A program made the translations under genes and the position numbers. Positions 28,101 to 63,200 of a stretch of DNA of 64,000 bases are shown here, piece by piece (position 1 is the first letter of the stretch; each line of letters starts with the position of its first letter). The DNA comes from Bugula neritina (Eukaryota > Animalia > Bryozoa), in assembly GCA_964035545.1 (NCBI GenBank), contig OZ037765.1, forward strand, positions 4,846,698 to 4,910,697, in the 5' to 3' direction. The notes beneath the pieces were generated by a model. The model was not told the origin of the DNA. It did no database searches and was given only the letters and a program-made list of their open reading frames with translations.

Positions 28101-31100
28101 GATTAGATGTGTGTGAATACATATATCTGAGTGTAGTTAAGGCAGAACTGAGGCAAGTGTCAACAGGACCTTAACCTTGCTCTAGAAGGCTAACTCCCCT
28201 CTAACAACACATATCCCGTGACATGCACATTCAGATTAGACGAGCTGAGTAGATTATCCACATGCCATCAGTTTCAGCCATCAGTTCGGCAGTCACCAGA
28301 TGTGCAGGGCAAGTTGACATGGCCGAAATGTGTCAACTTACAAATTTTACTGCCAACAAAAATTTAACTGTCAGCTGAATGCTTTGGCGAAGAGTTCAAC
28401 CAGACTTTAGATGGTTTTTTGTGTAAAAAGCATTTTTTGTGTAGAAGTACATACACCGCACTTACACGTATAGACGTACACTGTACTTACATGTATAGAC
28501 GTACACCGTACTTACACGTATAGACGTACACTGTACTTACACACAGAGATGCACACTATACTTACACATAGAAATGTACACTGTACTTACACGTAGAGAT
28601 ATAGTACACTGTACTTACATGTAGAGATATAGTACACTGTACTTACACGTAGAGACGTACACCGTACTTACACGTATAGACATACACTGTACTTACACAG
28701 AGATGTACACTGTACTTACACAGAAAGATGTAAACTGTAGTGACACGTATAGACATACACTGTTACTTACCTTTCACCAATATAAATCTGTAGTAGAGCA
28801 CTGTTTAGTATCTGGTTATCTCCCCTTGTGACCCTGTAGGGACTTTTGGGAAGGTCAGAGTAGGGGAGCAGACTCGGGAGGTTTGGGGCCACGTCAACCG
28901 TGAAGACGTTCTGCTTGATTTGAGGAAGTTGAGCAAAGAGACAGCGACTGACTACACCAAACAGAGTCATCTGGTAGCCTGTGAAACAGACAAATTTTCA
29001 ACAGCTATGATCTTAAATTACTTTCAAGGTCAGAACTATAAATGCCCTTATAATGAACAAGTTAGATAGATCTTAGCCTAATTTTCGTCTAAATTTGCTT
29101 TATTAATTATTTAATGAAATTTGTATAAAAAGTTTTGTGATGTTTAACTTTGCACTTTCAATATATTTCTAAAACCTGTGAGCTTTACCAAAGCGTTGGT
29201 GTGTATCGAATAACCTTCTTTGCAAGGTTACAAACTGTGCCAAATTATTGGTCTAAACTTATATTAAATAGCAACTATACCATAATTTAACAAGTAAAGC
29301 GCATTTTGCTAAAATATGGCCAAAATGCAATGAGCGTGGTGAAGTGTTTTGGTACAGAATTCTGGAGGATTTAATGAAATATTTCCATTCAATCAAATGT
29401 GACACCAGTACATGTCATTCTCGAATAAGCTGCATTAGGCTGATTGATTTATTCATCCCCAATAGTTTAGCAATCATTATAAACAAATTAGAATAAAAAA
29501 TTTGTCATTGATTTCTCTTCAAATTATTTCTGCAATAAATATTTGGGTGACTAAGCAGAGAGTTTGCATATGATTCTTTCTCAATGCCAGGCCCAGCTTC
29601 CAGTGCAACTCAAGTTGGCACAAAATGCCAGTTTTAGTGAGCCTTTGAAAGTTGACAAATTTTGAAGGTTTCTTTTGCTCTGAGAGTGACGAGCTAACTG
29701 CCAATCATTTCATTATTCAACATGTCACTCAAGTTTGGAATAATTTTATTATTCAAATGTTGAAATATTAACACACAGGTGCAACATTTTAAAGTTAGAC
29801 GAGGAATTCAAGCTAGAGGAAAGTTTTACCCGTGATCCTAAAGGTACCGGGCTGGCGGGGCGTACACAGGATGTTGATAAAACAGGGTCCAGACTTTGGC
29901 GGGAGAGTTCGGTTAAAGGGGTGAGACTGAAACTTGACTCCTTCAGCTATTAGACACTGTGAAAGAAAAAAATATATATACATATTTATATATATTTATA
30001 TACATAATAATAAATACGTTGTGTATTTGGAAGTGAAAGGCTATTGCGTGTTGAAACATGGTACATTTCAAAAAAACTTTTCAATCGACAGCAAAATATA
30101 TACATATCCATTTCACAGCCCTTCATTTTATTTGTCAATTTTTGTAGAAAATAACACTTATTTATTATTCAATTACATCATTTCATATTGATTCTACCAC
30201 TTATCGAGTAAACTGACACTAATCTCAACAAAAAATTGAGCAGCAAGATTTTTCCAATTGAATATTACTTTCAAATAATTTTAAACAACTTTTAACCTTT
30301 CCCAATTCTAACCTCCAACATTAATCTCACACATAAACACGTGGATGTAAGGGAGGTTACAGACATGTCTGACCAGACAACATACAGGTCTGAGTAGACA
30401 ACATACAGGTCTGAGTAGACAACATACAGGTCTGACCAGACAACATACAGGTCTGAGTATACAGCATACAGGTCTGAGTATACAACATACAGGTCTATAA
30501 CATTCTGAGAAAAATCAAAATCTAAATGAAATGTGGGCTTCACATTTTGAATTGCATAAAAGCTTTCAATCTGTGAGGCACATACAATGCCAGCAAAGTT
30601 TTTGGCAGACACGCTCAAGTTCAATTTGGCCTCACACACATCGACTTGGATGACATTCGTGATAAATATAGCCCTTGGACAACTCAGGAATCACATGATG
30701 TGTAATTCATCAACAGCTCAACTCTACGAGTGTGACACGAGATACTCACAATGTCGGTGACTTTCAGCGCCAAAGGAAGAGGATTGCAGAGATGTACCTC
30801 CACACTCCCAGCAGTTCCCTGCACCCAGCTGAACTCTGCCAAAATGTAACACGTTTAATGTAAATGTAGTTGAAAGGATGCTTAAAACTCTGCACATCTT
30901 TTTTTTAATTTTATGTATGTTTTAGCAGCCGTGATCTAAGGGTTACAGCGCTTGCTTAGTAAACATCAAAGGCCATTGGTGATGTTAGGAAGAGCATTAA
31001 GTCATAATTGCTCCTGTGTGTCATCTAAACACGTCCTTAGCCCGTTCTAACAAAAACCCTTTCCATCAGGAGTTCTCACAGGGGTAGTGCTTAGTGACTA

Positions 31101-34100
31101 TAGACTAGCGTAAGCTTTTATGTTTTAGCATGACTACCAATATATCTGTATTGAGTTGGTGCAAACCAAAAGCTATGTATGCAAAACAATTAGGTAATAA
31201 TAATCAGTGTCTTTTTTTTTCAAAAAAAGTAATACAAATGTCAATATAGCAATGTAGATGGCTAGTAATAGAAGCAAATAACATGATATAAATAATTAGT
31301 TTAAACAAAAAAATGACAAATGATATTAATGACAAAAGAACACGATTGTGGAGCGTGAAAAGAGTGAACTGGTGTTTGTTAAATATATAGGTTGAACATC
31401 ATATTTCATATAATAAATTCTTCAAGGTGTTTCATCACACAATATTGTATTATTTTTAAACAAGTGAAACTTTTCTATAATTTGTGTTGAATCAGAACAA
31501 AGGAAATGGTTACAGGATATGAGAGTATGTTGAGTAGAACTTGGCAGAGTAATGAATAGTGCAAGTAGTACTGAACCTACCATATTCAGCAACAGATGGT
31601 GATCGGCTAAGTTGAGGCTTCAAGTTCATCGGGGTGTATATAAACACGCTATCGCTGGGTAACACCTTTTTCAATTTATGGGGCTCTAAATGAGGAGGCA
31701 ACTTCAATACTTCAAAGGAACTAGAAATTTATAACATACAATTATGTAATAATACATACAATATGCAGGCAACAAAACATGTGATTATATAATGCAACAT
31801 AACAGTCGAATTTGCATTATTGCTTATGAAGAATGTTTTATTTATTACAAAAAATTGTGTGAAAAAGTTTTTATCAAATAAATTAGGAATTAGTTTGCAT
31901 AAATAACATCAAGTTACATAAATTCCGTGTTCATAGCTCCAATACTTCATGAGTATTGGATAACCAGCTACACATAAGACTCTTTACTCAATTCACCAAA
32001 GCTGATGGAATATGGAAAAAGAATATACCTAAAGTTACAAGGTATTACATGCCAAGCCATGCAAGTGCCACTAGCTAACACATGTATCAATATCTAAACA
32101 AGGAAAAGTGTGAGGATATTAAATGACATATTGGCTAGATATAAATGAGCAGCAGGCGCATCTGAGTGGCAGACGTATCTGAGTGGCAGACATATTTGTT
32201 GTGAGGATTGCTTCCTCTGTACGAGGATGCAATCTTTGTGTTTAGCAAATGGTATTGACAGGTATTGATCTCAGATACAACTTTATAATGGTGTACTGAA
32301 ACATACCATTTAAAATTCTCATACTAGTTTTAATAGTGAGTTATTCTAACCTTGAATAACAAATTAAAAGTTTAAGCTCAGCATAACAAAAATGTTGTAC
32401 AATTTACCGCAAAACTTTGAATCAAGTTGTAAACACATGACTATTTCGCAAAATATGCACGCAAATTCGAGCTAGTTTAACACGTAATGCAAACGTTGCT
32501 TCTCCAGTGTAAAAGGGAGGTCATAGAAGGCCGTTGCTTACGCCTCAAAGTTTAAATACGATGCCTAGAAATTGCACCAAACACAAACACCTGTGGCGAT
32601 GAGGTGTAATGAAGAATAATTAATCGTTTCATGGTTTGACACAAGATGAGCAAAATACAAAACAGGATATCAGCAAGGCAGAGAGTCGTCTCATAAATAT
32701 GTCGGCAAAAAGAGAAATTATCTCGTCTACAGTTTTACTCGTCTGTCTAGACGAAATAAGATTACCGTAACTTTTAAAAGACGGCAAATGCTAAAAGTGT
32801 AACAGCTTGACACGATTCAGCTTCGTTGTTTGACCACATAACTTGTTTTTAAAGCCTGAAATAATGTGTACCTCCACTGATAAATGTGTTCTTGAAATAA
32901 AAATATACGCGGCTTATTGACTTATGTTAAAATCTATGAGAACAACTTTATTTAAAAATTGCAGTACCTAAGTAATGGAAAGCATGTAAATACAACGGGT
33001 GGTAGAACTTGTCCCGTAGCTGTGGTGAGAGGTAGACCTCGGTCTATTTCAACTCGGGTACATGATTCCAGAAGCTGAACAACATCAATGAGCTCTTCTT
33101 CCTGCATCCAGTCATAAAGAGCGTGTAGCCTCAGTGATGAATGCCTAAAACAAGAAGCCATACAAGCAAGTTTTTCCATCACCAATCTGTGAACTGGGCA
33201 TTACAAATTCATTCAACATAGGTGGTCTGTCCATCGCTTTATTCTACCGCCACATCTGCAAGTGTGGCATTCAGCTGGCAGTATATCTTATGTAAGTGGT
33301 CTTTTTACCCAAATATTGAACCCACTACCCCTTAGCTGAATCCTTACAGCCTTCCTCTGTGGTCTTTACCTAGATGGCATTTTGTAATGTTGATGCATTG
33401 AAACGGCAACGCAAAAAAGAAGAAATTGAAAAACGATTATGATAAAAAGAGAAGAATGCATTTCCATCTCAGAGATGTAAATGCCATAATGGGATGAGAA
33501 GGATATTGTCCGAGCTCAATATACTTTACCTCCATCATTGAGAGCTCCTAATTCCGATTGATCCAAATTTAATAAAATAGTCATAAACTTATTACTTGGG
33601 CGGCCATGATGCATGCTAATATTAAGTTGCTTAGAGTTCAACTCCTGCGTGACATGAGAACAGATTTATAAAGTTTTGATTTAATAATAATATAGTATTT
33701 TATAGGACGGCCACTCATCCTTTAACTAGATGTTTAGTATTATAGGCCGATGCTGTACATGGAAATGATATAATACAGAAAAGTTACAGTTCTATTTACA
33801 GCTACAGTAAAGTTATATTAGGACAACTGTACTACAAATATTGGGAGTAATTCAGTTAAGGCTATCATTTCGTTGATATAATAGCAGCTGACCTTGCTAT
33901 GATTGGTTGAGCTCCAAGCTGCCTGGCAGCAAAGATCAGCTCATGGAAGACCCGAGCTCGAATGCCATTCCATCCAGTATCCACTTCTACAAGAGAAGAG
34001 AAAGCACACACCCCATGAGAGTAAGACAATACAAATGCCCAAGGTCAAAAAAGGTCATGAAGTGTTTTATTGTTTACATGTCACATGAAATCAAAGTTTT

Positions 34101-37100
34101 TTTTGGTATAAATATGACACAATTTTAAGATTTTCAGCCAACTTACAGGTTTTTTCTACTGCTTGACTAAAAGGGCAGGAAATGTTTAAGGAATTGAAAA
34201 AAGTATTAGAAAGTATGACACATACTAAAGTCTTGCCACACTATATTTATAACACCTACTTTATTAAAAATATTACTCAAAACTGGCTAGAAAATTCAAT
34301 TTTCACCCCAAAGCAAATAGAGTAAGTCATTATATGCTATAAATAAATTTTCTAAACATTTCAAAATATTCAACTTTTTTAGCGAGAAGACTTGTGAGTA
34401 GATGAATATTATTGTTACAACATAACCAACTGTCAGGTAGCGCCTTGGCTAAAAGCAGGTAAATTGGCCAGTTTTACAGCAGCGGCAAAACAGCTAGGTA
34501 TGTTGTAAAACACAAGACTGACACTCGGGAATGTGTCAGTTGGCTAATTACCTCTACCTCTGGCATATAATCATATGATCAGAGCTCTTGGGAGGGGCTA
34601 ACTACCGCAAGCAAATAGTGAAACAATGTTTTTACAAAACACAGACTTGGTGTTTTGCCGTCACAACAGGTACGGTGAGCAGCAGCTTCTCAGGGTGTCA
34701 GCTTTTGCTGTCGGCAGCGAGTCAAGGGTGCTCAAGTCTACGAACCTGGTTTTGAAGACTTTCAACGTCTGCTCAGTGAACACCACCAACATAAAAGCTC
34801 ACGCAAGTTCATAGTCACCATGCATGTGAAAAAAAACCCTGATAGAAGGGTTTTTTGTTAAATCAGGCTAAGAATTTATTCAGATGAGGCACAGAAGCAA
34901 TTATGACAAGATGCCCTTCCTAACCTCACCAATAGCCTTTACTGGGGTTTGAACCCATGAATTTGTGTTTATTAAGCAAACGCTCTAACCCCTAGACCAC
35001 GGCTGCTTCCCCCTCCCCCAGCACCACCAACAAATGACAGTATCGAATAACTTTAATATGAAAACTTTTAGTGACTGCAGTGTAGCATAGAACGGACTAG
35101 TTCTAGCTACTATGACGAGGCTGTCAACAGACCCCCCCCAACCATACAGCTAATAGACTGAGAGCATGTGTAATAAAGAACACACCTGAGGTGTGGTAGT
35201 CGGAGCCGATGAAAGACATGTTGAATCCTGAGAAAGCTTGAAGCAGCAGTTTATAACACTCGCTCCACGCAGGTGACGGCAGCAGAGGGTTCACGCAATG
35301 CATCGCTGCCACTCGCTTGAAAAATGCTGCCTTTCTGTGAAAATTTAGTTGGCTGTACAAATCTCCAATCACATCAAATCTCTCCACCTGTTAAAGCATA
35401 GCTGAATATTTCAGGTCACAATATCAACACTTCAGGTCACATGATCACCACAAAAAACTTGCACATAGAATAATCGTCATAACTAAAAACCAGAATCTAC
35501 AGAAATACATTATATAAAAAAATTAAATAATTTTTTACCAAAGAAAACATAATAAAAATTACAAATACAAGCAACAGAAAATGATGATTGAGTAAAGATT
35601 TTAGGATTTAGAAAGCAAGGAAAGTGAGTAATGGTACTTTGTAGACTATTACTATATTGTATTGTACTATATTATATTATATTACACTATATAACTACAT
35701 TATATTGTATTGCACTATATTATATTATTATGTTATTATTATACTATATAACTACAGTATATTGTATTGTACTATATTATATTATATTATTATATTATAT
35801 TACACTATACCACTACATTATATTATGTTGTATTATATTATACAGTATTAAATTATTATTTTGACTTATACTTTAAATTATATTGTATTATAATATAATA
35901 CTACATATTATATTATTGTATTATATTAGCCTATTGCACACATATAATTTATCTTGACATAAAAAATTTCATTACTGTTGTTTTACTGCTTTCAGTGTAA
36001 GAAGAATTTTTTCTATAAAAACATTTGCAACCCAGTGAATGCATTTTGTTGAAATAACAAACATAAAACTCAATAGTGCATCTGTGTGGTCTGACACAGT
36101 GTATGAGTGACACATATAATGCTAAACATGACACGTATGCAAGTCAAATGGCATGTTTTTACAACATAAATTCTGTCACATCAATGATTCAAAAATATTA
36201 ATTAAGAAAATCTTTTCATTTTGCTCTCATATAGGATCAAGAGCTTAGAAAACCTTCTCAAAGGCCAAATCCTGGTCTACCCCATTATTTTCAAGCAACT
36301 AGACTGTGACACCTAGGTGACCTTCGGCCAGAAATTTCTTGTATTCTAAATATAGCTCTTTAATAACTTTTTTTCAATGAATAACCACAGGCATTACAGA
36401 AGGTATTAGTTTGATGGAAAAAATCATGAAACAATAAAAAATACTAATAAAACCAAAGAAAAGTTTCAATAGAAACTCAAAATTTACATGAAAATTTTGA
36501 TAGGAAATTGACTGAAATGCACACTCACTGACCCTTTCTTTATAGGTGAAATCATCCAGGATTACGTAAGCTACATCGTGTAAGAATTCTGCAGCTGTTT
36601 TGGTCTTCTGTAAATAAATTTTAAGTACAGAGTAAATACTTCACAATTAACTCATTAAAGCATTACATTTATAAAAATCAACATTTTATAAACCACAACC
36701 TTTTAATCCTCTCAAAAATTAGAATAGCTACAAAACTTTGAAAAATTTAAGTTTATGCTTTTGAAAAAATTTGTAAGAAGTTTATGTGTGGATTAAAAAT
36801 AATAAAAGTGTAGAGAGTAAAAATATTTTTCGATATTTATTTGAAGGTTGTTAAATTAAATATGAAAAATGTTATCTCAAACTCATAACCAAGTTAGTAT
36901 TCAACGTTTACATTAGTTAATTAAGTATCATTCAGAAATCTGTATTCTGCATGTTTTTAAATGTAAAATTAAAGAAATTACTGTGCCTTGAACTTGCTAC
37001 AGAAATTAGCTGATTATTAGTCCACTATAATGTGTTGAAGTAAAGTAAAGCTTGGTTTAAACAGCTTTGCTTGTAAAGCTATATGTGTTTGTTGAGAATT

Positions 37101-40100
37101 TAGGTAAAAATGGCACAGGTAATAACGGCACAAATGAAAAAGTAGGTAAAAATGGCACACTGATGTTAAATTTTCTCAAACACAAACCTACACCCACATC
37201 CCAATATTGAAAATGTGTCATTTTTACCTCCATACTATTTTTGCCTACCTACTATTTTTACCTACTTTTCTATTTGTACCATTATTACCTGTGCCATTTT
37301 TACTGGTCACTGGTAGTTAAATACTTTAGCACGCGGTGCCAAGGCTATGAAAATGCTATTGAATATTTATTTAAAATCTTTCTTGAATGAGGCAAGAATA
37401 AAACATGATAGGGGAAGCTGCAAAGTATCAGTGGCAGTATCATATTAATAGCCAGTATGCACATGGTCAGTGCATTGTAACAGTGACACATATATTGCAT
37501 TATTATGTACAGTAATACACTCCAGACACCACTTGAGTCTATTCTGTAAATATGTCACGTTGAACGAGTGTTACATAAAGCACTGCAAGTATGAAGCTCA
37601 ACAAAGATGAACTGTTTCATCAACTTCTTAAAACTTTGACATTTCTAAGTATTATTATGCTGAGGAGCATTTGAGTTTGACTCTAATGGTCTAATTGAAA
37701 GATTAATTTACAGAGAGACTTTATAACAAGAGGGTTAGACACTTGGAAAGAGCCGACCACATGTCACACTGGCATCTTACTCTGCTATACACTTAACTCT
37801 GCTATTGTTACCTTCATACTCAACCAGCTTGCTCACATCTTTGATTTTTCACACCATGTGTGTGTTGTTCTTAATCTGAGTGTATTTATACATATTATTT
37901 CTATAATATCCTCCGTAGTCATAATACAAAGCTTCGGAGTAATGTCAGTTTATCTTTGCAAGAATTTCAACAATAAGTGCCTAGGCTTGTTCAATGATTA
38001 ATTAGCCAAATGAGAATTGGCCAAGGTTTCTGCCACCATAATTAGGCCACCTATGTTGTGACACACCTGAAAACTCTGTTTCACTTTCAATACACAGCCT
38101 ACTCCTTCCCATTACCTATGATTACCATATTTATGATAAGTATGACACCATCAGGTAACAGGGATAAAACAATTTATAATTATTTTAACCCTCTCATAAA
38201 AATCAATTTTAAATTTTATGTTATAGAAAACGTATAAAATCTGATAATTCAATGTTTAAAACCCTGAAAATGTTTCCTGCTAACAGAATTTTTCAGGCAG
38301 CAATAAAAAACAGTCACACATAAAATAAGACATTTAATTTTTATTTATTCCATATATATAATACAAGTTGTATTACTTGAAGAAGGAAAAAACAGACACA
38401 ACATTTTCTCATCAGAAAGAAAACAAATGAACAAAACAATATATAAGAAATGTCCAACAACAATCATATTAGATAAAATAAATTAGAAAAATATAAACTA
38501 TTGAAAAGTTCCTATATAATCTGAATAGGCTTCTAACACAAAACCAGTTTGTATCTTGGGTTACATGATCTATATTGAGCTTATAAAATATCTTAAGGCT
38601 TATTTAGTTGCACTATTACCAGCAGCACTTTGCTAGGAAAAAAGGGCCAACGGGGCCAGCACTACTGGACCATGGCAGCTTCTATATGTACTCTAAAGAA
38701 CAAGGAAGTTATTATCATAAAGGCTTAAATGTCACTGATACAAATCATTTTATAATTGAAATGGTAATGCACTGATCTGTGGTAAATGGCAGTAAAATGA
38801 TTAATGAAGTAAATGGGAATATTTAGGGGGCAATTTTTTAGTGTTATGCGTTCTGTTTCTGGTGTTAGCAAACCAAGTGTCAACTTTCACAGAAGAAATG
38901 CCACACAGAGATGCCAGCTCTTTTTTCTCTTCGTAGGTAGGGTATGGTCTATACTCGTGCTCTTTGAACCATTCGTTTAATATAAATTTAGCTTTAGGAC
39001 TTAGGTATCGCTTGCCGCTAGATGTGTGTTCAGAACAGCTCTCCGCAGCATCGCTTGGTTCTGGACTACTCGAGGTAACATTTTTTACAACATCTTGAAG
39101 ACTTTCGATAACCGACTTATTCTGTGTGAGGTCAGAAACCAGTTCACTAGATTTCTGGAGGCATCGAGCTACAACCTGCTCCAGACTGGGTTTAGTATTG
39201 GTGGAGGGGCTGCACTTGCTCGGTTCAGGAGAAGATCTGGAAGGAAGATCCTCTAGTGTGGAGCTTTCACTGGGTGATTGAGCACACACCGTCTCCACGT
39301 CAATCAGCTCTTCTTTATTATCTTCAGCTGCCGGTGTTGGCTCAGGTTCAACAGCTTTATTTTCGGCAGCAGTACTGTTAGAAGAACCGCTCAATGGCTC
39401 GATTTTATATTTATGCATAAGCCTTTTTTTCATAGCCAACTTGCTATTCAGCATATGCTTGCCACCATTATAAGTAAGTGTGTTGAAGGACCTTGCTCTT
39501 GTGTTGGCCATCCATTTCTTTACCTATGCATATATCAACGTATATTAATTAGAATGCTACATACCCCTCTGACATGTCACAGCCCAATTAATACCGAATA
39601 AATCTTACCAAAATACTATGTTATGTGGACTTAGTGGCAGCAGGATTGGCAACAAAATTAGCCCTTATTTATGTGAAATCAAGCTGAGCGAGTGGCATTC
39701 CCATGTATAAGCACCATGAGATAATGATAAGTAAGTATGTAAAGTCCATGCCACTCATCCTATGACACTGACTGCCTGTTAGCATGTCAAACGTTGACAC
39801 TTTTTAGCAGCCAATGAAAATGACACCAAAGACCTGAAAGCAGACTTAGCTGCTGAAGGGCTATCAATTTCCAATAGACCCATCAACTCGCAGCTACTCA
39901 ATAATCATCATAGCTTTATGACTCTCATTACTGGGCAACTGCTTTGAAGAACATTAATTCTAGATCTTACACACTACAAGTATTCACACCACAACACGCA
40001 ATTAGCTGGTAATCATGGTGTTACAGGCCAGAGGTGTTATAACCAATAACTGCACTTCCTCCACGCAAAATGAGGCTTCGCAACGGGAAACCTTACGTGT

Positions 40101-43100
40101 ATTATCACCACAACAAATAAATTAAGTTAATTTATAGCAGAGAAATCACATTTTTTACAGCTAAAAATGTATAATTACAATAGGTGAGCATAATTACTGC
40201 TATAAACGTAACAACAAATGTATTACCTGGTTATGGGAAATTCCCCCTGCCAAGGCCAAGTCTTTTACCTCCTCGTCAGTTGCATAAGGGTGGTCCCGGT
40301 GTTGCTGATACCAGCGTTGGAGAATAGATACGGCCTTTTTTGACAAAAATCTGCTTTTCTTTTGTACACCAACATTTGAATTAGCTGGTTTATTTTGAGA
40401 CCCACTAAGATCAAGTGGAGCTTCTATGTTCTCTAGAAGAGCGGAGGGGGTGCTGGAGGCATTGGTAGAAGGCAGGGGAAGGCTGGAACCCAGGCCTCCA
40501 GGCAGATTAACTAAAATAATATATAAGTCATTATTTTTCCACGACTTGAATGATTTCGTCTTAACATCTGCTACAATACCAAGGCATTTTTCTACTGTGA
40601 GTGTTTAAATTCTCATTTTTGTGTCATTGTGACAGTTAGGCACTTGGGTAATTGCTTGATATTAGATAAGTTTTGCAAATGTAAACACAATCGTGTAGTT
40701 AAAAATAACAGCTTGAGGCAGTGTATCAAAGTGTCACCCGTATTTACTCATATTTAGAGCATTTCAACTTGAGAAGTTATGATTAAAGAGATATAGTTAC
40801 ACCTGCGGGGATGATAATCTATATCACAGCACTATTCACACAATACCTCTGAGAAACTGTAAAAACTTGAAGAGGTAAAATAAACGAGAGCCAAGCATCA
40901 GCTGCACTGGCAAATTAGCCAGCATAATAATTAATATTAGGCTAACCTGCGTTGAAAGATATGCATAATTTTACATAATGCTCATGAGAAAAGGCCAATT
41001 AATATAATTTTTTGAAGTGTCATTTCTACGGTTGGCAAATTAGATTATATAATCGTATAGGATTCAAAACCAACAATTTTTCACAGGTTTTTGATATTCT
41101 GCATAATTATCTAAACCCCAGAATAATGAGAGGTCTTATTGTACACGCCTATAAAATCATCATATATTAAAGATAATCAAGGACAATATTCAACAAAGTA
41201 AAAAACCCGGATCTTTGATTATAAAAAAGATTTGAGAGTAAAATTAGGTGCTTGAAAGTTTTTCACAAACATGATAAAAACAGAGTATAAAAATTTTGAT
41301 AAAACAACTAGGAATAGTTTATTGGACCTAGCAAGTGTTTGTAGTTTCAAGGTCAGTGAAATATAGAGAGCTATTTTGTATATAGAAATACAGGTTGCTC
41401 TTTTATGTAGAAACACAGATAGCTGCTGTGTATAAAAGACTACATATAAACACTTGATGAAAAAAAAACCACTGGTTGTGTACCAAATTTGAAATACAAT
41501 TTTAAATATAAGTTAAAAACAAAAATTGAGTTGTGTTGAATAAAACATAAAAAACTGACTTTAGGTACAACTACAAGAGCAACTATGTGTAATCAGTAAT
41601 AAGGTAATACTTTAAGGCACCAAATGTTTTAGAAAGTGAAATTATTTTTATATAATATGTGCACAATCATATACACGCATTTTCATAAGCATTTCTATAT
41701 ACACATTCTCAACAAAAACCTAAGCATGTAAAGCAATATAAAATTAACAAATACAAATGAAATATTTATGTTTGAACAATACTTACCACCAGGTTTCATA
41801 GCAACATCTGGCATCAAAAGTTTAGTCTTTTTCATCAGTGTGTCCAGAGTAACCTTCATCTGATTGATAAGGGTTTCTCGCTCCCGATTATAATGCCAAT
41901 TTATAAGCTGACTGGCATCAGCTCCATGACTGTTAAACGCCAGCGCCTTATACCTCTGAACCTCTATCTGGTCAGTATACTGGTAATACGTAGTAAGCAG
42001 CGCGGGGAAATAAGACTGCAGTTGAATCAGCATCATTTGCAGTACAGCGTGTTCTTTAGCTAAACCGTCGCTAACAGTGGTAAACGAAGAGTCTAAAGAT
42101 CTAGGTGAACTACTAGTACTACTAGTTTCTGTCAGCAACGAATATGGCACATTAGATCTAACACAATCTAAAGCTAACGTAACTTGTAAGTCGTTAAAAA
42201 GAGGATGACTTTTTAGCTGTTCAAGTCTTTTTCGATGATCACTATTGCTTTCACTATCTAGGCTACCAGCCCTTTCGGCTTTGATGGTTGGTGAAGACAT
42301 TTCGAGTAGAGCGTCGCGTTCGCTACGTTTGCTCTCGTGGAAGAGACTGTGAATCGCCAGAACTGGAAGCTCGCTACTCATAATAATATAGCTGATTGAG
42401 AGAGTAACCAATCAGCTATACTCATTCATTGTATCAATATAATAGCAATATGAGAATAGAGCTGCAATAGAGTGAGACTTAATACTCGTGGAGTGCTTAG
42501 TTCGACTGCCTCTGTCACTCCTTTGCATCATAAGTAGCATGAAAACGGTAACAGGAAAAGAATGCCAATAGGTGTTTGTCTGTATGCCAATCAAGCAATG
42601 ATGAGTATTATTCAGCGTGTCAGCAATAATAAACATGTCACACTATAACCTGCCTGCCACACACTCAAGAGTGGATACATTAGCATGTCAATACACTTTG
42701 CTCTAACTGCCCACTCCCAACTTTACTTACACCAAGTAAAATTACATCAAATAAATATCTACATAAAAGGTAAAGAAATAAGTATATAATCATTGAATAT
42801 AAAAACCTAAATATCAAGTCTTATTTTCTGAATTGAAAAAAATATAAATCCGGCCCTGTAAAAAGCATGATCAAGCGTAGCACAAATAATTACGAGCATC
42901 TTTTACACAATCTTTGAGAAGTGGGTGATTAGCTTTTCACGGTGCCGATAGAGTGTATCAAAGAACAACGTGTTTAAACAAACCATCTACTTATGTAAAA
43001 CAAGCTAATCTATTGATGCATTTGAGAGCTACTAAGGCAGTTGGCCAACACAAAATCTCATAAATGAATTTTTTAACATCAAACCTTCAATAAATCATGA

Positions 43101-46100
43101 ACCCTTGGCTAGAGCATGGTTACCACACACTAAATAAAAATATGAAATGGTTTTAATTCAGAATTGTAATCTTTGTCAATAAATAGTCCTTTAGCTAAAT
43201 ATAAATTTTTTTCTAGTTTTAACTTTTAAATTAATAATTATTGACTTAGAGTAAATGGTAGTGCTAGAAGTGCTTCATGAACTTATACGTGGTATTCAAT
43301 TTTTTGTAAATTTCAAATTTATGAAACTCTAAATAAAGTCAAAATTAATTTTAACTTTAATTACACGTCTCAGCAATTTTAGCTGATATTTAATTTTGAG
43401 ACAACTTTCTCAATATCAAGATAGAAGTGAAAACATGTCTCACTCGAGTGTTAAAATATTTATTTAAAATAAAAACTTTGGTTTAAGCAAATATTTCAGC
43501 AACAAAGAATTGCACTACTAGCAGTATAATGTAATTATGCAAGATAATGCCATTTATTACCTAGCCGCATATTATCCTATATAATTATAAAACTCACTCA
43601 TGCAAGTTTATAATCGCTACTCCTGTGAGAAACCCCTGATAGAAAGAGTTTTTGTTAGAACTTATTTAGATGAGTCACAGGAGTAATTATGACCGAATGC
43701 TTTTCCTAACATCACCAATGGCCTTTGTCGGGTTCGAACCCATGACTCCGTGTTCACAAAGCAAACAAACGCTTTAACCCCCTACATAATTACATTATCT
43801 TACATAATTATAATATTCTCTAAAATGCGTCTAATAAAATTCTTTGTTGCAAAAATATTTACTCAAACTAAAGTTTTTATTTAAATACATATTTTTGCAC
43901 CCAAGTAAGGCCTATTTTCAATTTTCTACTTTGATAAAAAATGTTAAGTGAACTTTCTAAAAACCAAACTAAAAAACACCTAATTTCAACAAATGATACA
44001 GTTGTGTCCTACCTTTCTAAAACCTCAAAAAAAACCATCTTAATGCCAAAGTAATTAGAAGGTGGCTTGTGTAATTATGACTATTTAGATTTTACTACCT
44101 TATTACTAACAAATGTTCTCATGCACGGGTACCGTAAACATTTCAAACATTCTGAAATTGTGATTGAAAATGAAAAATATTAAAACATGGCATTAGTTGA
44201 GCTTTTCTCAAAACTATTTCAGGAATACATGATTTATGGCGTCAAAAATGTTTTTGAAAAAGTGCAGGTGGGTATTATTTAATTTCCACTAGTTAGGAGA
44301 AAGGTGAGGGAGTGAAGAATTATAAGTACTAAACTTGGTTGATGGGCAACAATGCAGTGAGTTAAGACTACTATTATGATAGAGCCATTGCAATAGTAAT
44401 TATTACACTGTAAATAAATTACCAGTACCACATTGCTGAGTGTATCCCCATAGATTATAGCATATTACCGTATGGTAAGCTTACAGCTAGTCTGTGTGAA
44501 AAGTAGTTCATTCTCCATAAATAAGACAGCTCAACGTCCTTAGACTCATTCAATAGAAACAGATTTTAATCTATATTTGTGAGCTAGTTTCATCAGATTC
44601 CTATGCCTGAGGTGTTACTTTTTATTTCTGAAGAAAAATGGCATCCACTCAAAAGTGACCATTAAAAATATGAGAACTAAACTTTTTTAGCAAAACATGT
44701 ATGTATTTTCATAGCTTGTGCTTTAATGGAATATAATTATTATAAAGTAAAAAATATTATACAAAACTATTACTATAACGGCTTAAAACTCTCATACAGA
44801 GTGAGAATAGAATAATAATACTAAAATAAAACTTAAAGACTGAAACCCCTACTGTTTACATGTACAAGTTTTCATGAAGAGTAGCATAAACTAATATTTA
44901 AAAACCTAAAATATGTATTTAGCCGAAAATTATAGATAGACTCAGCAAGAGAAATAAAACTGAGTGAGAGATGGAAGGAATACATGCTGTTAAAGTGTGA
45001 AACGACTATACACGCAGCACACTGAGGAGGTGTTAGAATTACATAATGACATTTAGATTTTAGCTAATTAATAGAGTGCTCCACAGTTAATTACGATGGT
45101 TAAAAGAGTGTTACACAAAACGAATTAGAAATGACACACCAGAATAATATAACTTTATTAGAAAATACAATCCTATGCTGATATATACTGTATATCAGAA
45201 AAGGGGATAACATATAATCTGGGCAATGCTAGTAGATGTCACATCAATTGTTTTGTGAACGCCTTTGTACTAAGCTATAAAGTAGATCAATTTCATGAGT
45301 GCACTTCAAAAGGATGCCACGGAACGACTGGAGCACTGATCCTACAGCACCTAGCCAGTGATTTTTCAAACCGAAAAATAATGGAAACGCCTCAGTGCTA
45401 ACCCGTTCCACCACTTTCATTAGCTAGTCAAGTTATAGATTACTTAGTTGTAAGAGGGAATGCATGCACAAGTATAACAACATTACTAATTATATACATA
45501 TGCCAGTCAATTCATATTTTCAAGATTTATATACCTTTTAAGATTGTAAATTTAATTACAACTTAAAAGCAGCCAACACTCCAAACATATGCCCAAGAAA
45601 ACAAATGTCTAAAAACAACACTAAAGTGTACTATTTACTTGTGTGTAGTCTTAGAGATGCTTACTATGTTATATCGGGCTATTAGTACGTTAATCTAGAA
45701 TTCAAATATATATTTTCAAAAATTATAAGTTATTTTTTTGGTCACAGATTGAGTATGTTAGATCTAAACGTGTATAAAATTTGCTGTTAGATGAGAAATG
45801 ACCTCCAACAAAGAACAAATCCCAGTAATTAATACAAATACCCAGTAATATGCAGTATCTAAGGGTATTACAACATACTCTGTGGTAGAGGTTGCACTCT
45901 CAAGCCAAAACAAAGGTGATAGTATTTGACAAACCTTGTGAGTAATGAGCAACCTAGTGGCCTTCAGACTTGCCTCCATCTTTATTATGGCGGCTGCCGG
46001 ATACTATAAAACAGCAAATATATTGTTTTATTATCTGTTATAAAATAAACAATGTGGTGATTAAATAAAAAATTTACTTGTACCCACATATACTGACAAA

Positions 46101-52100: not shown

Positions 52101-53336
52101 ACCAGAACCTTTGTCTAACTGATCACCACTAAACTATATGCACGTATCATTATTGCACGTTTTAATGAACATTATTCTGCCATAAACTTGCCGGAAACCC
52201 AAAACGTTGAGACAGTTAAATAGATGATAGATACTTACAGCCAACCCAAAGGTCATCACCTGTTGCTTTCAGCAAGTCCATTGCTGCCTGATACTGAACA
52301 ACAGCCTCGTTAGGCATATCAACAAGTAAACACAAGTCGCCTATCTGTTTACGGCACCTTGCTAAAAACCTGTTCCTGACAGCTCTACAACAAACATGTA
52401 AAGTAGTATACCAAGTGGTTATAAACATGCGTCTTGCAGCTCCAGAAATACTATGTAATACATATAAGCTATAGGTCCACAATCTTTGGCTCATACTGAA
52501 TATAAAAACCTAGCCCTAGTTCCATTGTCCCACTCCAACAATTGTATATTCAACTATAGACTTGAGCACAGTCTAACTTACTTCACTTCCAGGTCCATGC
52601 TAATCACGCCAAACTTTTCAAAAGGAGCTGTTAGGATTGACGGCTGTTTCAGCTGAACGTTGGTAGCAGTCAGTCTCCTCGACTCCAACACGTAGAATAT
52701 AGATCTACACATATACTCAATGTCATGGTTGAGATAACGGCATGCTTCATCACAATCCATGTAGCCAAGCATTCGTCTTCTCGTGTCATCCGATATATCC
52801 GATAGCACCTGGCTCAGCTCTTCATCACCATATTGGGGCAACTCTTTGTCAAATGCATTTGATTGGTCGGTGTAATGGTTTGGTTCAATAACCAGGGAAT
52901 CACTGGTTTGAGGTGAACCGTTGATTGATTCATTATGGTTTTCCGTCCTTTCCACTAGGATTTCCTTGTGTGGAATTCCCAGAATTACAAGCCGAGTATC
53001 GAGCAGCGTACTGTCAAACAAATTTTTCAAGTCTGTATACTGTTTCTCCAAATCTTCTCCGGATACCTGATCATTATATTGAGCTATGCATATCAATCCT
53101 AGAACTTTACGGTGATACTGAAAGTCGCCCCACTCGCTATTCTCCACTGGGTAATTCAATACGAAACGAGGAGAGAATTTTCGACCATCTTTTGTCACAG
53201 CAATTAAGTCTATTTTATTCACTTGGTCCCACAGCTGAAAAAATTTCTCCTTTGAGTTGAATGGGCCAATCGCTGAAACAAGAACGATGCAAGAACGGTG
53301 ATCTTCAGGCCTCTGTTTGTATTCCGGGTAACTCAT
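22133..53336 (-). CDS. TRAPPC9: Trafficking protein particle complex subunit 9 (NIBP/Trs120), ~21 coding exons
   Basis: Minus-strand exons (approx.): 53336-52582, 52384-52239, 51297-51166, 50362-50238, 46003-45935, 36607-36533, 35387-35186, 33987-33893, 33145-32968, 31720-31581, 30835-30750, 29957-29831, 28978-28771, 27241-27156, 26863-26678, 25482-25349, 25200-25087, 23633-23441, 23204-23124, 22955-22830, 22273-22133 (TGA). Diagnostic motifs: YPVENSEWGDFQYHRKVLGLI, RCRKQIGDLCLL, LWVGCALEG, FHRKAAFFKRVAAM, FIYTP, WVQG..VHLCNPLP. Confidence 0.95.
22397..22560 (+). mobile_element. SINE copy, 5'-truncated at the B box and preceded by an inverted duplication
   Basis: Same core and tail as the 14664 copy (GGAAGAGCATCCAGTCATAATTGCTCCTGTG ... 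GACTATAAACTTGCATGAGTTTT). Confidence 0.88.
23712..23900. repeat. Imperfect (GTGTGACAGACA)n repeat
   Basis: Visible degenerate tandem units upstream (on the minus strand) of the TRAPPC9 acceptor at 23634. Confidence 0.8.
25610..25794 (+). mobile_element. SINE copy with TSD
   Basis: Core GGTGATGTTAGGAAGAGCATACAGTCATAAAT and tail GACTATAAACTCGAGTGAGTTTT. 14-bp direct repeat ATAGAATGCAACTT at 25596-25609 and 25795-25808. Confidence 0.85.
28450..28770 (-). repeat. ~25-bp minisatellite containing GTAAGT, starting at a TRAPPC9 donor
   Basis: Minus-strand unit GTGTAAGTACAGTGTACGTCTATAC, about 12 units. Confidence 0.95.
30359..30495. repeat. 21-bp minisatellite ACATACAGGTCTGA(G/C)(T/C)AGACA
   Basis: About 6 tandem units. 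Confidence 0.92.
30924..31118 (+). mobile_element. SINE copy (internal deletion across the B box) with TSD
   Basis: AGCAGCCGTGATCTAAGGGTTACAGCG head plus the family core and tail. Direct repeat TATGTTTTAGCA at 30916 and 31119. Confidence 0.85.
34792..35021 (-). mobile_element. Full-length SINE copy with TSD
   Basis: Reverse complement has the tRNA head, B box GGTTCAAACCC and core TTAGGAAGGGCATCTTGTCATAATTGC. 11-bp TSD CACCACCAACA at 34781-34791 and 35022-35032. Confidence 0.9.
35650..35930. repeat. AT-rich low-complexity tract (TATTA/TACTA); similar tracts at 11800-12110 and 22330-22660
   Basis: Simple-sequence composition; generates spurious Y/I/L/F-rich ORFs. Confidence 0.85.
37104..37303. 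mobile_element. Foldback/MITE-like element with ~50-bp terminal inverted repeats
   Basis: GTAAAAATGGCACAGGTAATAACGGCACAAATGAAAAAGTAGGTAAAAAT at the left versus its near-exact reverse complement ending at 37303. Confidence 0.75.
38801..42381 (-). CDS. TALE-class double-homeodomain transcription factor (spiralian TALE/SPILE-like), nested in a TRAPPC9 intron
   Basis: Exon 1 42381-41787 (alternative Met at 42300; contains LKSHPLF; GTAAGT donor), exon 2 40510-40227, exon 3 39523-38801. The spliced ORF is 533 aa from the first Met. HD1 = KKSRFLSKKAVSILQRWYQQHRDHPYATDEEVKDLALAGGISHNQ|VKKWMANTRAR, with an intron at the Q|V position typical of TALE genes. HD2 = GKRYLSPKAKFILNEWFKEHEYRPYPTYEEKKELASLCGISSVKVDTWFANTRNR. 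Both have the 3-aa loop extension. Minus-strand AATAAA at ~38339-38344. Confidence 0.92.
43590..43785 (-). mobile_element. SINE copy (slightly 5'-truncated), ~1.2 kb upstream of the nested homeobox gene
   Basis: Reverse complement has B box GGTTCGAACCC, core CCATTGGTGATGTTAGGAAAAGCATTCGGTCATAATTACTC and the family tail. Confidence 0.87.
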
Positions 53337-57900: not shown

Positions 57901-58961
57901 TGTACTATATATGCACTATATATACTCTGTATACTCACAAGTATGCATGTACTATATATGCACAGCAAGCATTTTACATTCACAGCTATTAAAGTCACTA
58001 TCACTACTTGATATAAATTGACGGTTTTAATTTTTTGATTGATTTGTTTTTATAAAATAAGTACTGGTTATGTTGCTTGCGCTAGCCTACTGTCCTGTGT
58101 TGTTTTTCATTGTGTTAGATGTGACGGTCTCCTCTTTACCCTCAGTGATGAGCCCTCCACCCATTTAGGAACTTTGCCATCCGCACACTCAGAGTGGATC
58201 AGGGCGTGTTGCTATAACAAGATTGTAAGTATTTCAATACTTGGCTACCAGTTCAGTATAATATTTGTGTGTGTACTGTATATTATATGAGTATAATACA
58301 CACATAGTAACTGTATACTATATGAGTATAATATATGTACTAACTGTATACTATATGAGTATAATATATGTACTAACTGTATACTATATGAGTATAATAT
58401 ACGTACTAACTGTATACTATATGAGTATAATATATGTACTAACTGTATACTATATGAGTATAATATATGTACTAACTGTATACTATATGAGTATAATATA
58501 CGTACTAACTGTATACTATATGAGTATAATACACACATAGTAACTTTATACTATATGAGTATAATATATGTACTAACTGTATATTATATGAGTATAATAC
58601 ACACATAGTAACTGTATACTATATGAGTATAATATATGTACTAACTGTATACTATATTAGTATAATACACACATAGTAACTGTATACTATATGAGTATAA
58701 TATGTGTACTAACTGTATACTATATGAGTATAATATATGTACTAACTGTATACTATATGAGTATAATACACACGTACTAATTGTATACTCTATGTGGTAA
58801 CTTTGTTTCAGTCACAGAGTCTGTACACTGTTGGAGAAGATGCACTTCTTTGCTGCTGGAAACCATCTGAATCAGTCAAAGCCTCTCCTTCTAACTCCAG
58901 GTCAGCGAAGGCGGGTCATACAAAGTCAGCAAGAGACAGGAAACCTTATACTAGACCCTGA
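54978..58961 (+). CDS. WDR89: WD repeat-containing protein 89, 12 coding exons
   Basis: Exons approx. 54978-55120, 55365-55471, 55552-55636, 56193-56242, 56359-56468, 56637-56700, 56982-57114, 57403-57483, 57621-57659, 57753-57841, 58119-58224, 58812-58961. Motifs: LAILCSTHNVRIYD, FLSFDMTHNDRFLCAGT, YEDLHSDDITQVRFHPN, SDDGLVNCLDISQPSEEDAL, TVGEDA..CWK and a C-terminal RKPY, all as in WDR89. Confidence 0.92.
57245..57392 (+). repeat. Minisatellite (TACTTACTCTGTACAC) ending at a WDR89 acceptor
   Basis: Tandem 14-15-bp units ending ~10 nt before the AG at 57401-57402. Confidence 0.9.
58275..58790 (+). repeat. 33-bp minisatellite containing TACTAAC, in the last WDR89 intron
   Basis: Unit TATATGAGTATAATATATGTACTAACTGTATAC, with a CACACATAGTAAC variant; about 15 units. 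Confidence 0.96.
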
Positions 58962-59166: not shown

Positions 59167-60171
59167 TTACTTTAAGATGTAAGGTTGTGTTTTTTGGAAT
59201 TGTCTTATTTTGTTAATTATTATGTGAATGAATGATGCTGGGAAAGCTTGATATTTCTCTTGAGAGTATTTGCTGTACTGTGCAGGGTCAGCTGTGGCCT
59301 CTAATAGAGTCTTCAACAAGTGTTGATTCTGTAATATAAGATGTAACTACTTGTCTTGAATCACTATAAGATATACTGTAGCTGCTAATATCCAACATAA
59401 CTTATGTAGGGGAATGTTTAGTTTAAGCCTAATTCACCATCGTAACATTAAGCTTAGGTTTTAAGCGTAGAAGGGAAACAGAACAATTGACTGTTGTGGT
59501 AAATTAGTAAGCCCTTGTGTGATGTGACCATATGTGACAATTGCAACTACTATAGCACTTATTATTCAATTATATTGCTCATCAAAACTTGTAGTATGGC
59601 TCAATATGTAAATGAGACTGTTGGCATCAAGTTGTCTCATAGCACTTTTTAGCTCAATAATAATGCCTGCACACTGCAAGGAAAATACTAGTTAATTACA
59701 ATAAATTAAAAATTCACATGTGCATACCTTGAAGATGGCCTGGTGCTTAGGAATGTCGAAGAGTTTTCCTTCCTTTACTATTGATTCTATCAACCATGTA
59801 TATCGAGCTAAAGCATACATGTGCGTAGTCACAATCTTGTTTTACTTGGTGAACATTTATGATTAAATAAAAAAAGATTTTGAACAAGACACTGCATAAT
59901 TTACTAAACAAAATGATCAGTTGACCTTAAATTACAATATTAAATAATCAAACCTTCAAATGTGACGAACTGCAAGTTGAAGCCATTAGCAGTTGCCTGC
60001 CCTTTAGTTTTAAATCCAATCTTAAGGGCATCAGATTTTATGATAAAGGCTTGTGGCTGGTCAACGGAGTTGCATGTTTCATAAACCAGAGTAGAGTGTC
60101 GAGTTCCTACAGTAGGCTATATAGTCTTTACATGTATATAAGAGGGATATGTTTACAGATACATATAGTCT

Positions 60172-60231
<60 letters not shown>

Positions 60232-63200
60232 CGCATTTTGTCGTAAAAAATTTAGGTCTAGTATGCAAAAATAAAATAAAATGATTTATTTTAAAATTAT
60301 ATCACTAACCAATTTTTTGTAGAGTGAGCACAGTTTCACATAGCAAATGGCCATTCTCTTGCAATGACAATTCAGGTATAACAATGAGGATTCGTCTGTT
60401 CTTTGCTGGGAAAACCTCCCACAAGCAATTCATATTGGTTGGATATTCACCTGGCCAGTTAGGACTAGTAATATATCCATGTATAGTGCCATTATACACA
60501 CCTCCACACTTTCTCGCTATATGTAACAACAAGGCCCTAGTAAAACTTGTAACAGCAATTTATATGTTAAATGGATATGCTAGTCTAACGATTGTTTGTA
60601 GCATCTCTAACCAGGACTGTTTTATGCAAAATCTAGCTTATGCTTTACATTTACTATCTATGTAGTCCATGCTTGTCCCTTTAATTACAATATAATACAA
60701 AATGTAGAGTTAATTATATATTGAAGTAAAAGATCAATTAAAACAATATTATTATAAGCATTAATATAATAATAGACTAAAATTACTAAAATATTTAGTC
60801 ATAAAAACATTTTTCATATCAAAAAAGACTTCATTTGAAATGCTGACTCAATTAAATATTACTGAGGAATATATTATTTGTTAAATCTAGAATATTAATG
60901 ACCTTCTATTGCTGCTATTTTGTTGCTACATCAAATACAAGGTTACATAATGAATGCTCTGTTACCTTTACACTGACTGGCTGACACAGCTCCAGTGCTG
61001 TCGGTATACGTCAGCGCAGGACACTGAATGCAGTAGTCTTTCCCCATTTCTGACTGGTAAGTATTCATTGGACACAGTGTGCAGCGCAGTGTATGCTGGT
61101 CGTAATAGTGTCCAGCTGTACATGTCTCTATTGGTATACAAGTTTGAGGTGGAAACACAATACACAACATGTGGCAGAATATTAATATTGCATAGGCTTA
61201 AGTTATACACAAGTTTTTATAATATCTAAGAATGCAATCAAAACAGCTTCATTGAAGTTATTTTTTATTGATAAAAAAACTCACGCAAGTTTATAGTCAC
61301 TATCCCTGTGAGAAAACCCCTAATGGAAAAGGGTTTTTTGTTAAATCAGGCTAAGGACTTATTCATGGGTGGGGCACAAGAGCAATTATGACTGGATATT
61401 CTTCCTAGCATCACCAATGCCCTTTGTTGGGTTCGAACCCATGACATCGTGTTTACTAAGCAAACGCTCTAACCCCTAGACCACGGCTGCTCCCTAATTT
61501 ATGTCACATTGATAATTTTTGAAAATAAAGTTCATTGACTATTATCTCCCATGTACAAGGATTCTTTCACAATAAGAACACAATATCTGTATAAAATATA
61601 AGTTGCCAAACTTTGCCTGGTAGAAAAATTAGGTTTAACTAATCAGTCTTGCAAGTATTGCAGCCTAGTGAGTCTAAGATTCTCACCCAAAAGACAGTCT
61701 CTGAAAGACTTAGCTCCGGTGTACTTTGTATCTGCATTACTGGGGCAGGAGATACAACGCACTCTTCTGGAGTAAGGCTGGTAGGTTCCTTTGCTGCAGG
61801 AAATACATGGCTGAAAGCCTGTCTTTGAGAAAGTGCCTGGTTCACAGGCTCCTACAAATACACAGAATTATAGGTATTCTAATTTGAAGAATTATCTGGT
61901 AATCATATATACAACCTTTATTCAAGGAGCAGTATATATTATGTGAACATAGTCTGTAGGTCATAGTGACTAGCTCTTTTATGTGAGTTACAAACAGATT
62001 AATTAACTATAGGCTAATGAGTTAATACATGGTTGTAAACTGACAAAAAAGCAAACTGTCTACTAGTATACTTTTTATATAGCATCAGTTCTAATAAATT
62101 TTCATATCATATGAGCAGCATTGTAATTTGAAGCCAATGCATTCTATGAACAAAAGCACCAAACTCCTCTAAATAATCTAAATAGTTTAAGAATCGGTTA
62201 AATAAATGTAAAATAATAATAGTATGAGAAATTACACAATGACAGAATTCCAGGACTAAAACCTATTAAATCTTACCATCACAGTCGGAGGGTTTTCTAG
62301 CTCCTACAGTGTGACCTCCTGAAGGACAAACTTTGCAACGTAGCTGGTTGTCCTCATCCTGATATGTCCCTCTTGGGCAAGAGATGCATGTGGAGTTCAG
62401 AGTATTGAAATATGTGCCAGCTCGGCATTTTACTAACAATATAAAGAGCTAACTTGCAAGCAGTGAAGGCACTCAACACACTTCAATATACTATGTGCAC
62501 AGAGCTTGTTTTGACTTGCACACAAAAAATCAGGATTTAAAATACCACTAAAATATTAGGATTCTATATATAATAGAAAGGATTACGATAATAAAATATT
62601 ATGTTATTTATGTACACTAACATACTAGAATACTATACAATGATGGATTTGTTTGCATAAGCTTTGACCAGGGAGATTTCCAGTCAACAAGAAACTAATT
62701 CAAAACATGAATGAATAAAATTTGTTCAAAATAAATATTTATGAATATGTTGATTATTGCTAAAAACAGCCTTATAGCTTTTGAGTTGAATTTATTTTTA
62801 GAATGCAGATATAATATCCAAAGCATTTATTTTGAAAATATTATACTGAATATTTTATACATCATTAATGTATTTTTACAGTTTGATGAATTGCTCACAT
62901 TTTTCATAATTTACACATTCCTTATTTCCATTGATGACATCATTGATAGTTGAGAAGCTGAAATTATTAAAATATTACTCTCAATTACAAGATCTGAACA
63001 TTTCATAAAGCCTGCCTTTGGAAAAGAAATAAACTACGTTAGAACGTTACAACTGAGGTTGGACAACATTAATGTGAGTAGAAAATATATAGTAATATAG
63101 CTAAAAGCCTATGATAGCTTTTATAACTACCAGGTAAAAAGTAGTACTAATTAGCTAAGGTAGCAGTAATTAGCAAAGGTAACAGTATTTAGCAAAAGTT

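Follow-up and report, generated by a model that had tools for sequence, protein, structure and literature searches.

A probable TALE clade IV (SPILE-B) orthologue with two homeodomains, nested in a TRAPPC9 intron of the bryozoan Bugula neritina

The name TALE clade IV is said to go back to Paps et al. 2015, and the name SPILE-B clade to Morino et al. 2017. Members of this spiralian clade (TALE-IV) have a pair of TALE homeodomains, with a conserved region C-terminal to each (Barton-Owen et al. 2018, PMC6118893). Equating TALE-IV with the SPILE-B clade, PMC8524836 characterizes the proteins as having 'two homeodomains, modified PADRE domain', with the PADRE-like region upstream of the homeodomains, and dates the zygotic onset of mollusc SPILE-B expression to the 16-cell stage, within the second quartet or in the 2d blastomere. 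Bryozoans were not sampled in these two surveys of spiralian TALE genes (PMC6118893, PMC8524836), and a literature search found no published work on bryozoan TALE genes. Here we analyse a stretch of 64,000 nucleotides (nt) of the Bugula neritina genome (assembly GCA_964035545.1, contig OZ037765.1, positions 4,846,698 to 4,910,697 of the forward strand), referred to below as the window. An earlier note on this DNA had pointed to a TALE gene with two homeodomains lying within an intron of TRAPPC9, a trafficking gene. Our analysis indicates that this gene is very probably a single-copy orthologue of lophotrochozoan TALE-IV (SPILE-B), nested in that intron.

Gene structure, family membership and coding constraint

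Coordinates are those of the window, and all features described lie on its minus strand. Exon 1 (41787–42381) contains the start codon and the N-terminal conserved region and ends at a GTAAGT donor. Exon 2 (40227–40510), between a TTTTAG acceptor and a GTAATA donor, encodes a linker and positions 1–47 of homeodomain 1 (HD1). Exon 3 (38801–39523), from a GCATAG acceptor to a TAA stop, encodes the end of HD1, a conserved basic extension, a long linker with three conserved motifs, homeodomain 2 (HD2) and a C-terminal extension. The exon lengths (595 + 284 + 723 = 1602 nt) amount to 533 codons plus the stop, both introns are GT-AG (phases 1 and 0) and the reading frame is unbroken across them, in agreement with the earlier proposal of three exons spliced in frame into a protein of ∼ 530 residues. 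The intron that splits HD1, also predicted, falls at canonical position 44/45. The first AATAAA past the stop, a candidate poly(A) signal recognized by motif only, is found at 38344–38349, 452 nt downstream. The exons were searched and scored one at a time and the frame was read from genomic DNA; a search of the genome for a second copy showed that the gene is present once.

HD2 (38837–39025) is complete, with 63 residues, and matches the Pfam profiles Homeobox_KN (E 1.6e-15) and Homeodomain (E 8.8e-7); the first match scores above the curated cut-off and places the domain in the TALE superclass. Positions 1–47 of the 63-residue HD1 (40227–40367) were recognized by Homeobox_KN (E 8e-4 for the part in exon 2, profile positions 1–29 of 40), by the motif HPYATDEEV and by the homeodomain tree described below. 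The profile positions left unmatched in exon 2 correspond to the first residues of exon 3 (39476–39523), where the end of the recognition helix, VKKWMANTRAR...NTL, is a motif shared with published TALE-IV HD1s and with all orthologues. The sequence motifs on which the two homeodomains had first been proposed (HPYA and WMANTR for HD1, RPYP and WFANTR for HD2) are all present. Residues W48, N51, R53 and R55, together with the arginine of the N-terminal arm, are retained in HD1 and HD2, and because these four are kept both homeodomains are expected to bind DNA.

A length-free HMMER search with exon 3 retrieved seven orthologue clusters (53–65% identity), which are the exon-3 frames of related species, and then ∼ 50 clusters of 300–950-residue proteins with two TALE homeodomains 85–135 residues apart. 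Named members come from molluscs (Patella vulgata, Patella caerulea, Haliotis, Gigantopelta, Argopecten, Tegillarca, Potamilus and the chiton Liolophura) and from the annelid Lamellibrachia satsuma. A profile in which each translated exon formed a row of its own matched mollusc-type members only in the protein collection. Two of the proteins can be identified with entries of the published alignment (PMC6118893): the HD1 of P0033 (Patella vulgata) is identical to that of Pv_TALE-IV.1, and P0053 equals Cg_IV_14.1 except at one position. The Bugula HD1, VKKWMANTRARSFNTL, is of the same type as the published TALE-IV HD1, VKKWMANKRVR.(F/C)NTL (Pv_TALE-IV.1, Cg_IV_7.1/14.1, Pd_IVB.1). The extension after HD1, NTL.YNGGKH...KL..KKRL, and the one after HD2, NRTHNTKKLPPKYS, are both common to annelid and mollusc members, and intronless orthologues hold both homeodomains in one open frame. 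In a tree built on the first 46 homeodomain positions of family members and one TALE-I outgroup, a single branch (81/81) parts all HD1s from all HD2s, with the Bugula domains on the expected sides. Since one branch separates the two sets family-wide, the two-homeodomain design is ancestral to TALE-IV, and it has already been published. The earlier note had assigned the gene to a spiralian-specific TALE lineage, which is borne out by the architecture shared with TALE-IV/SPILE-B; the novelty it had seen relative to one-homeodomain TALE families does not hold, as a clade IV with two homeodomains is described in PMC6118893 and PMC8524836.

The N-terminal helical domain (41815–42246; residues 46–189, in exon 1) is a candidate PADRE-like region, as judged from alignments and an AlphaFold model. 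It was aligned with the N-terminal regions of mollusc TALE-IV proteins; 18 columns are invariant across 14 sequences, and two motifs, of the types HPLF.DLQ and IE..RY, are shared with the mollusc proteins. The model has helices at 46–75 and 105–189, with a predicted local distance difference test score (pLDDT) above 90 at residues 110–180. Pfam gave no match for this domain in the Bugula gene and 12 relatives and no PBC, MEINOX or IRO domain in the gene, and a fold search with the model returned nothing above a template modelling (TM) score of 0.36. By Pfam, language-model and fold searches the domain has no detectable relative beyond the spiralian TALE clades. It may mediate protein contacts, by analogy with the PBC and MEINOX domains of canonical TALE proteins. 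Homology of exon 1 to PBC is not claimed: the language-model lead (0.78) is below the tool's threshold, Pfam is empty and TM is ≤ 0.36. P0188, a 314-residue protein with a single TALE homeodomain, carries both N-terminal motifs of TALE-IV; the N-terminal domain is therefore common to other spiralian TALE clades.

These data bear on the alternative that the gene is a divergent IRX/MKX- or PBX-type TALE gene, outside TALE-IV, that gained its second homeodomain independently. Both domains have Ala at position 50, as in IRX/MKX, the best match of HD2 among solved structures is Exd/PBX1 (E 5e-11), and the weak lead from exon 1 to PBC points in the same direction. However, the N-terminal domain, HD1 with its tail and HD2 with its tail are all shared with published TALE-IV proteins, the split between HD1 and HD2 is family-wide, Pfam detects no PBC, MEINOX or IRO domain, and the fold search stays at TM ≤ 0.36. 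Ala50, which the earlier note took as a pointer to IRX/MKX, is uninformative, being found throughout TALE-IV in a gene family whose Bugula HD2 scores best with PBX/Exd. We consider an independent origin of the second homeodomain very improbable and retain orthology with TALE-IV.

Coding constraint was assessed against a close relative. The exon 1 search returned a single protein, P0001 (99% identical), which is found on four contigs (JGI, Logan) collinear with the window at 94–96% DNA identity, introns included. The contigs of P0001 and P0153 are genomic, as both proteins read on into introns. The longest such contig, L005 (95.5% identical), spans exon 1 to mid-exon 3 and stops short of HD2. 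Against L005, the ratio of non-synonymous to synonymous substitution rates (dN/dS) is 0.025 in exon 1, 0.14 in exon 2 and 0.11 in exon 3, and exon differences fall mainly at third codon positions (44 of 60, with 10 at first and 6 at second positions). No indel occurs in 1351 exon bases, whereas the 2308 non-coding bases include 24 gap columns, and 4/4 splice sites are preserved. The HPYATDEEV motif of HD1 is kept in L005 and at two further loci of related species, L009 and L011. Low dN/dS, the third-position excess, the absence of exon indels and the kept splice sites together mark the frame as translated and subject to purifying selection. An unexpressed pseudogene, a decaying or silent relic that happens to be open, would fit a gene seen in genomic DNA with no spliced protein of the species in the protein collection, and would fit the few lineage-specific changes in HD2. 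It is hard to reconcile with dN/dS values of 0.03–0.14, with 73% of differences at third codon positions, with the lack of indels or stops, and with an exon structure and splice sites that are kept at ∼ 45–65% protein identity, and we give it very little credence. Judged by its sequence, the TALE-IV locus is a real gene that is selectively maintained.

A genome-wide Homeobox_KN scan gave 15 matches, and there is therefore no large SPILE-type expansion in this genome. Among other TALE genes of the same genome, a homeodomain at G000:C1:13103230-13103412 (L002) is, by eye, close to published spiralian TALE-I. Five proteins (P0009–P0013), one of them from the diatom Cyclotella meneghiniana, have 4 to 10 tandem TALE homeodomains. 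They were rejected as relatives of TALE-IV, as none shows the HD1/HD2 signature motifs, and appear to be an independent case of multiple TALE homeodomains outside animals. A human oral metagenome contig (L048) was excluded from every comparison.

Nesting within TRAPPC9

The TRAPPC9 exons just upstream (45935–46003) and just downstream (36533–36607) of the TALE gene have open frames and AG/GT borders, and delimit a host intron of 9,327 nt. The TALE gene fills 3.6 kb of this intron on the same strand, beginning 3.55 kb past the upstream host exon and ending 2.19 kb ahead of the downstream one. Homology and borders of both exons were confirmed, and with them the earlier placement of the gene wholly between the two on the host strand. 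The two exons are consecutive in TRAPPC9 of Lamellibrachia, Patella, Argopecten and Liolophura.

The same order, TRAPPC9 exon, TALE gene, TRAPPC9 exon on one strand, with the same three-exon structure of the TALE gene, was found in relatives (L009/L010, L011, L021–L024 and L025) that amount to at least five species, the window's own included. In the annelid Lamellibrachia (L016, L017) an intronless TALE gene lies between homologous host exons on the same strand. In the chiton Liolophura sinensis (L018; same downstream exon) and the scallop Argopecten irradians (L019; same downstream and upstream exons), the NCBI annotation treats the TALE gene as distinct from TRAPPC9, within which it lies on the host strand. 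In the limpet Patella vulgata (L012) the same TRAPPC9 intron is occupied, with the TALE gene antisense to the host. Homologues of the upstream host exon precede the TALE gene in L009/L010, L016/L017 and L019, and in L012 lie on the TRAPPC9 strand; homologues of the downstream exon follow it in L009–L011 and L021–L025, and likewise in L012, L018 and L019.

Because the same intron is occupied in bryozoans, an annelid and molluscs, the nesting probably predates these phyla. The simplest reading is that the ancestral copy probably occupied this intron in sense orientation before the split of bryozoans, annelids and molluscs, and was later turned round by a local inversion in the Patella lineage. 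The earlier note had proposed looking for a TALE gene in the orthologous TRAPPC9 intron of other spiralians, and one is present in Lamellibrachia, Liolophura, Argopecten and Patella. Its description of a housekeeping gene serving as host stands as far as nesting in TRAPPC9 is concerned, but understates an arrangement that is probably ancestral, with an orthologue in the same annelid and mollusc intron. A literature search found no published mention of TALE-IV/SPILE-B genes sharing one TRAPPC9 intron across three phyla. Mis-assembly of the segment into the intron is unlikely, because the same order is found on independent contigs of at least five species.

The Lamellibrachia satsuma protein KAI0210378.1 (L017, GCA_022478865.1), named TRAPPC9, consists of a TALE-IV protein fused to the downstream half of TRAPPC9; its first TRAPPC9 residues are matched by exon 36607–36533, and the annotation gives the upstream half of TRAPPC9 as a gene of its own, with 470 residues. 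Since the model splits TRAPPC9 in two, we regard the fusion as a prediction artefact. That the three Bugula exons are themselves alternative TRAPPC9 exons, yielding a TRAPPC9–homeodomain fusion or an alternative host 3′ end, would agree with their position on the host strand and with this model, in which the TALE frame runs on into downstream TRAPPC9 exons, but is scarcely credible in view of the in-frame TGA (42414–42412) 30 nt upstream of the ATG of exon 1 (42381), the loss in L005 of the sole plausible acceptor before that ATG (a pyrimidine-rich CAG just ahead of it), the antisense orthologue in the same Patella intron, the separate nested genes in the NCBI annotation of Liolophura and Argopecten, the family members found away from TRAPPC9, and the split that the Lamellibrachia model imposes on TRAPPC9 itself.

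Several points weigh against a constrained, ancestrally nested TALE-IV orthologue. The gene model was read from genomic DNA, and a profile search of the protein collection gave no full-length spliced protein of this species. HD1 was scored as two pieces, the tree held family members and one TALE-I outgroup as its only references, and the dN/dS figures cover the stretch from exon 1 to the end of L005, ahead of HD2. HD2 itself departs at residues that are otherwise invariant in the clade (ANTR for ANKR, KEHEY for RKHLY), a hint that constraint may be somewhat relaxed in this lineage. Finally, no TRAPPC9 exon lies within 10 kb of the family members of Potamilus (L013), the L014 array, L015 and L020. 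The members at these four loci are likely to be dispersed duplicates, because all are intronless. In L014 (contig ENA ERZ25072999, 10001–14366 and 21389 onward) at least three intronless two-homeodomain TALE-IV genes stand in tandem; this array represents an expansion specific to its lineage and located outside the ancestral nest.

Further parts of the host gene were located on either side. N-terminal TRAPPC9 exons lie at 52240–53159 and match Pfam TRAPPC9-Trs120 at positions 70–133 (E 0.001) and 254–300 (E 0.0027). Seven further exons (28773–35390; best tblastn E 1e-14) are collinear with residues 769–1114 of P0163 from Lamellibrachia. Upstream of TRAPPC9, exons at 59943–62448 encode cysteine-rich repeats and a CUB domain and, by eye, resemble a SCUBE-like gene. 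Tandem repeats at 58248–58811 and 30295–30690 read as long open frames (YSYSIQLVHIL-type and DLYVVYS-type, respectively) and are probably intronic minisatellites.

Conserved non-coding elements and proposed function

Two non-coding blocks of the nested gene are conserved. The upstream block (42474–42666), a candidate promoter or 5′ untranslated region with ATTGG boxes, lies 95–285 nt upstream of the ATG. By blastn it is 73.5% identical to L011 over 219 nt (E 4e-35) and 74% identical to L009 over 85 nt, a level of conservation equal to that of the exons, and the alignment has invariant columns. ATTGG (reverse CCAAT) occurs at −210, −188 and −31 from the ATG. The second block, in intron 2 (39524–39944), was recognized by its identity to L005 and L011. 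Over the 531 nt from 39944 to 39413, which run from intron 2 into exon 3, there are zero differences from L005, where ∼ 24 would be expected at a background of ∼ 4.5%; identity of the element to L011 is 81.8% over 510 nt, above that of every exon. The element is single copy in the genome, and an nhmmer search of L009 and of the annelid and mollusc loci gave no match to it. We rejected an RNA gene as its explanation (no Rfam match; no RNA fold signal, z −0.64). The 39944–39413 interval holds six TGACA/TGTCA cores compared with 1.2 expected; the count was made post hoc, and we treat the excess as a lead for binding by TALE proteins, not as a finding. The TGA before the ATG, the upstream CCAAT block and the intron-2 element together suggest that the nested gene has its own regulation, with the two conserved blocks as its putative promoter and enhancer.

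Substitution along the locus is uneven in other respects. Third codon positions differ from L005 at 9.8% (44/450), compared with 3.6% for introns and flanks (39052–42710), which makes the apparent rate at synonymous sites almost three times that of the non-coding DNA around them. CpG context accounts for only part of the exon differences (21/60). The 3′ part of intron 1 (40600–41099) has 4 differences from L005 in 500 nt, compared with 5–13 per 100 nt in neighbouring bins; blastn did not detect this stretch in L011.

We propose a product in four parts: the helical N-terminal domain, HD1 with its basic tail, a long linker with three motifs, and HD2 with its tail. Such a protein would most likely act as a transcription factor with sequence specificity, either recognizing a bipartite site or bridging two sites. 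Transcription of the gene itself probably starts at a promoter of its own within the TRAPPC9 intron, under the control of conserved non-coding elements inside the gene, and its position in that intron would go back to the ancestor that bryozoans, annelids and molluscs have in common. For both DNA binding and the independent promoter, the predictions derive from conserved residues and sequence elements. A role in early embryonic cell specification may be proposed solely by analogy with the expression of mollusc SPILE-B (PMC8524836). It is conceivable, though we think it doubtful, that TALE-IV/SPILE-B and TRAPPC9 form an ancient host–guest unit, kept because the guest depends on the host locus for its regulation; the link could consist of enhancers lying among the host exons, or of host transcription gating the timing of zygotic activation. 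Bryozoans have abandoned spiral cleavage. If such a unit exists, a constrained cleavage specifier in a bryozoan would offer a probe of the gene's role under a changed cleavage programme.

Comparison with known systems

Few lineage-restricted regulators have been linked to blastomere specification in spiral cleavage. The SPILE/TALE-IV genes belong to these, and a constrained, single-copy bryozoan member broadens the taxonomic base for questions about the origin of the family. Nesting in one intron across three phyla is a rare and easily scored synteny marker, which helps to recognize the ancestral copy among duplicates that are dispersed and often lack introns. The pair TALE-IV/TRAPPC9 is also a natural case of a sense-nested developmental gene beside a housekeeping host, and the nesting explains annotation errors of the kind seen in the 'TRAPPC9' fusion model of Lamellibrachia.

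The closest counterparts are the TALE-IV/SPILE-B proteins themselves, with which the Bugula protein shares two TALE homeodomains, a region after each, a putative PADRE-like region and the signatures KKWMAN.R...NTL (HD1) and WFAN.RNR..NT (HD2). The intron within HD1 is also found in some annelid members. In contrast to mollusc TALE-IV, the linker between the homeodomains is ∼ 150 residues long, instead of ∼ 30–40, and contains three clade-specific motifs. Throughout the clade of the Bugula gene, HD1 has PYA for the PYP and TRAR for the KRVR of other TALE-IV proteins. Bivalves have 2–3 copies, whereas the Bugula gene is single copy. The published members come from other phyla; the present one is from a bryozoan, a phylum outside those surveys.

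PBX/Extradenticle proteins resemble the Bugula protein in HD2, for which they are the best solved match, and in having an N-terminal helical region before the homeodomain, but PBX has one homeodomain, Gly50 and a PBC domain, which Pfam and the fold search did not detect here. DUX4 and DUXA, of the PRD class, likewise have two tandem homeodomains in one polypeptide. They are found in mammals only, activate the early embryonic genome and serve as a model for linked homeodomains that read a bipartite site. They belong to another homeobox class, without the three-residue loop extension, and are not homologous to the Bugula protein as a two-domain unit; the search of solved structures returned them as weak single-domain matches only. 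PEG13, a mammalian non-coding imprinted RNA, is unrelated in sequence and belongs to another clade but is also nested in a TRAPPC9 intron, a positional curiosity only. The two-homeodomain clade itself was thus known; what appears to be new here is a bryozoan member of TALE-IV, its nesting in TRAPPC9 across phyla, and the conserved intronic element.

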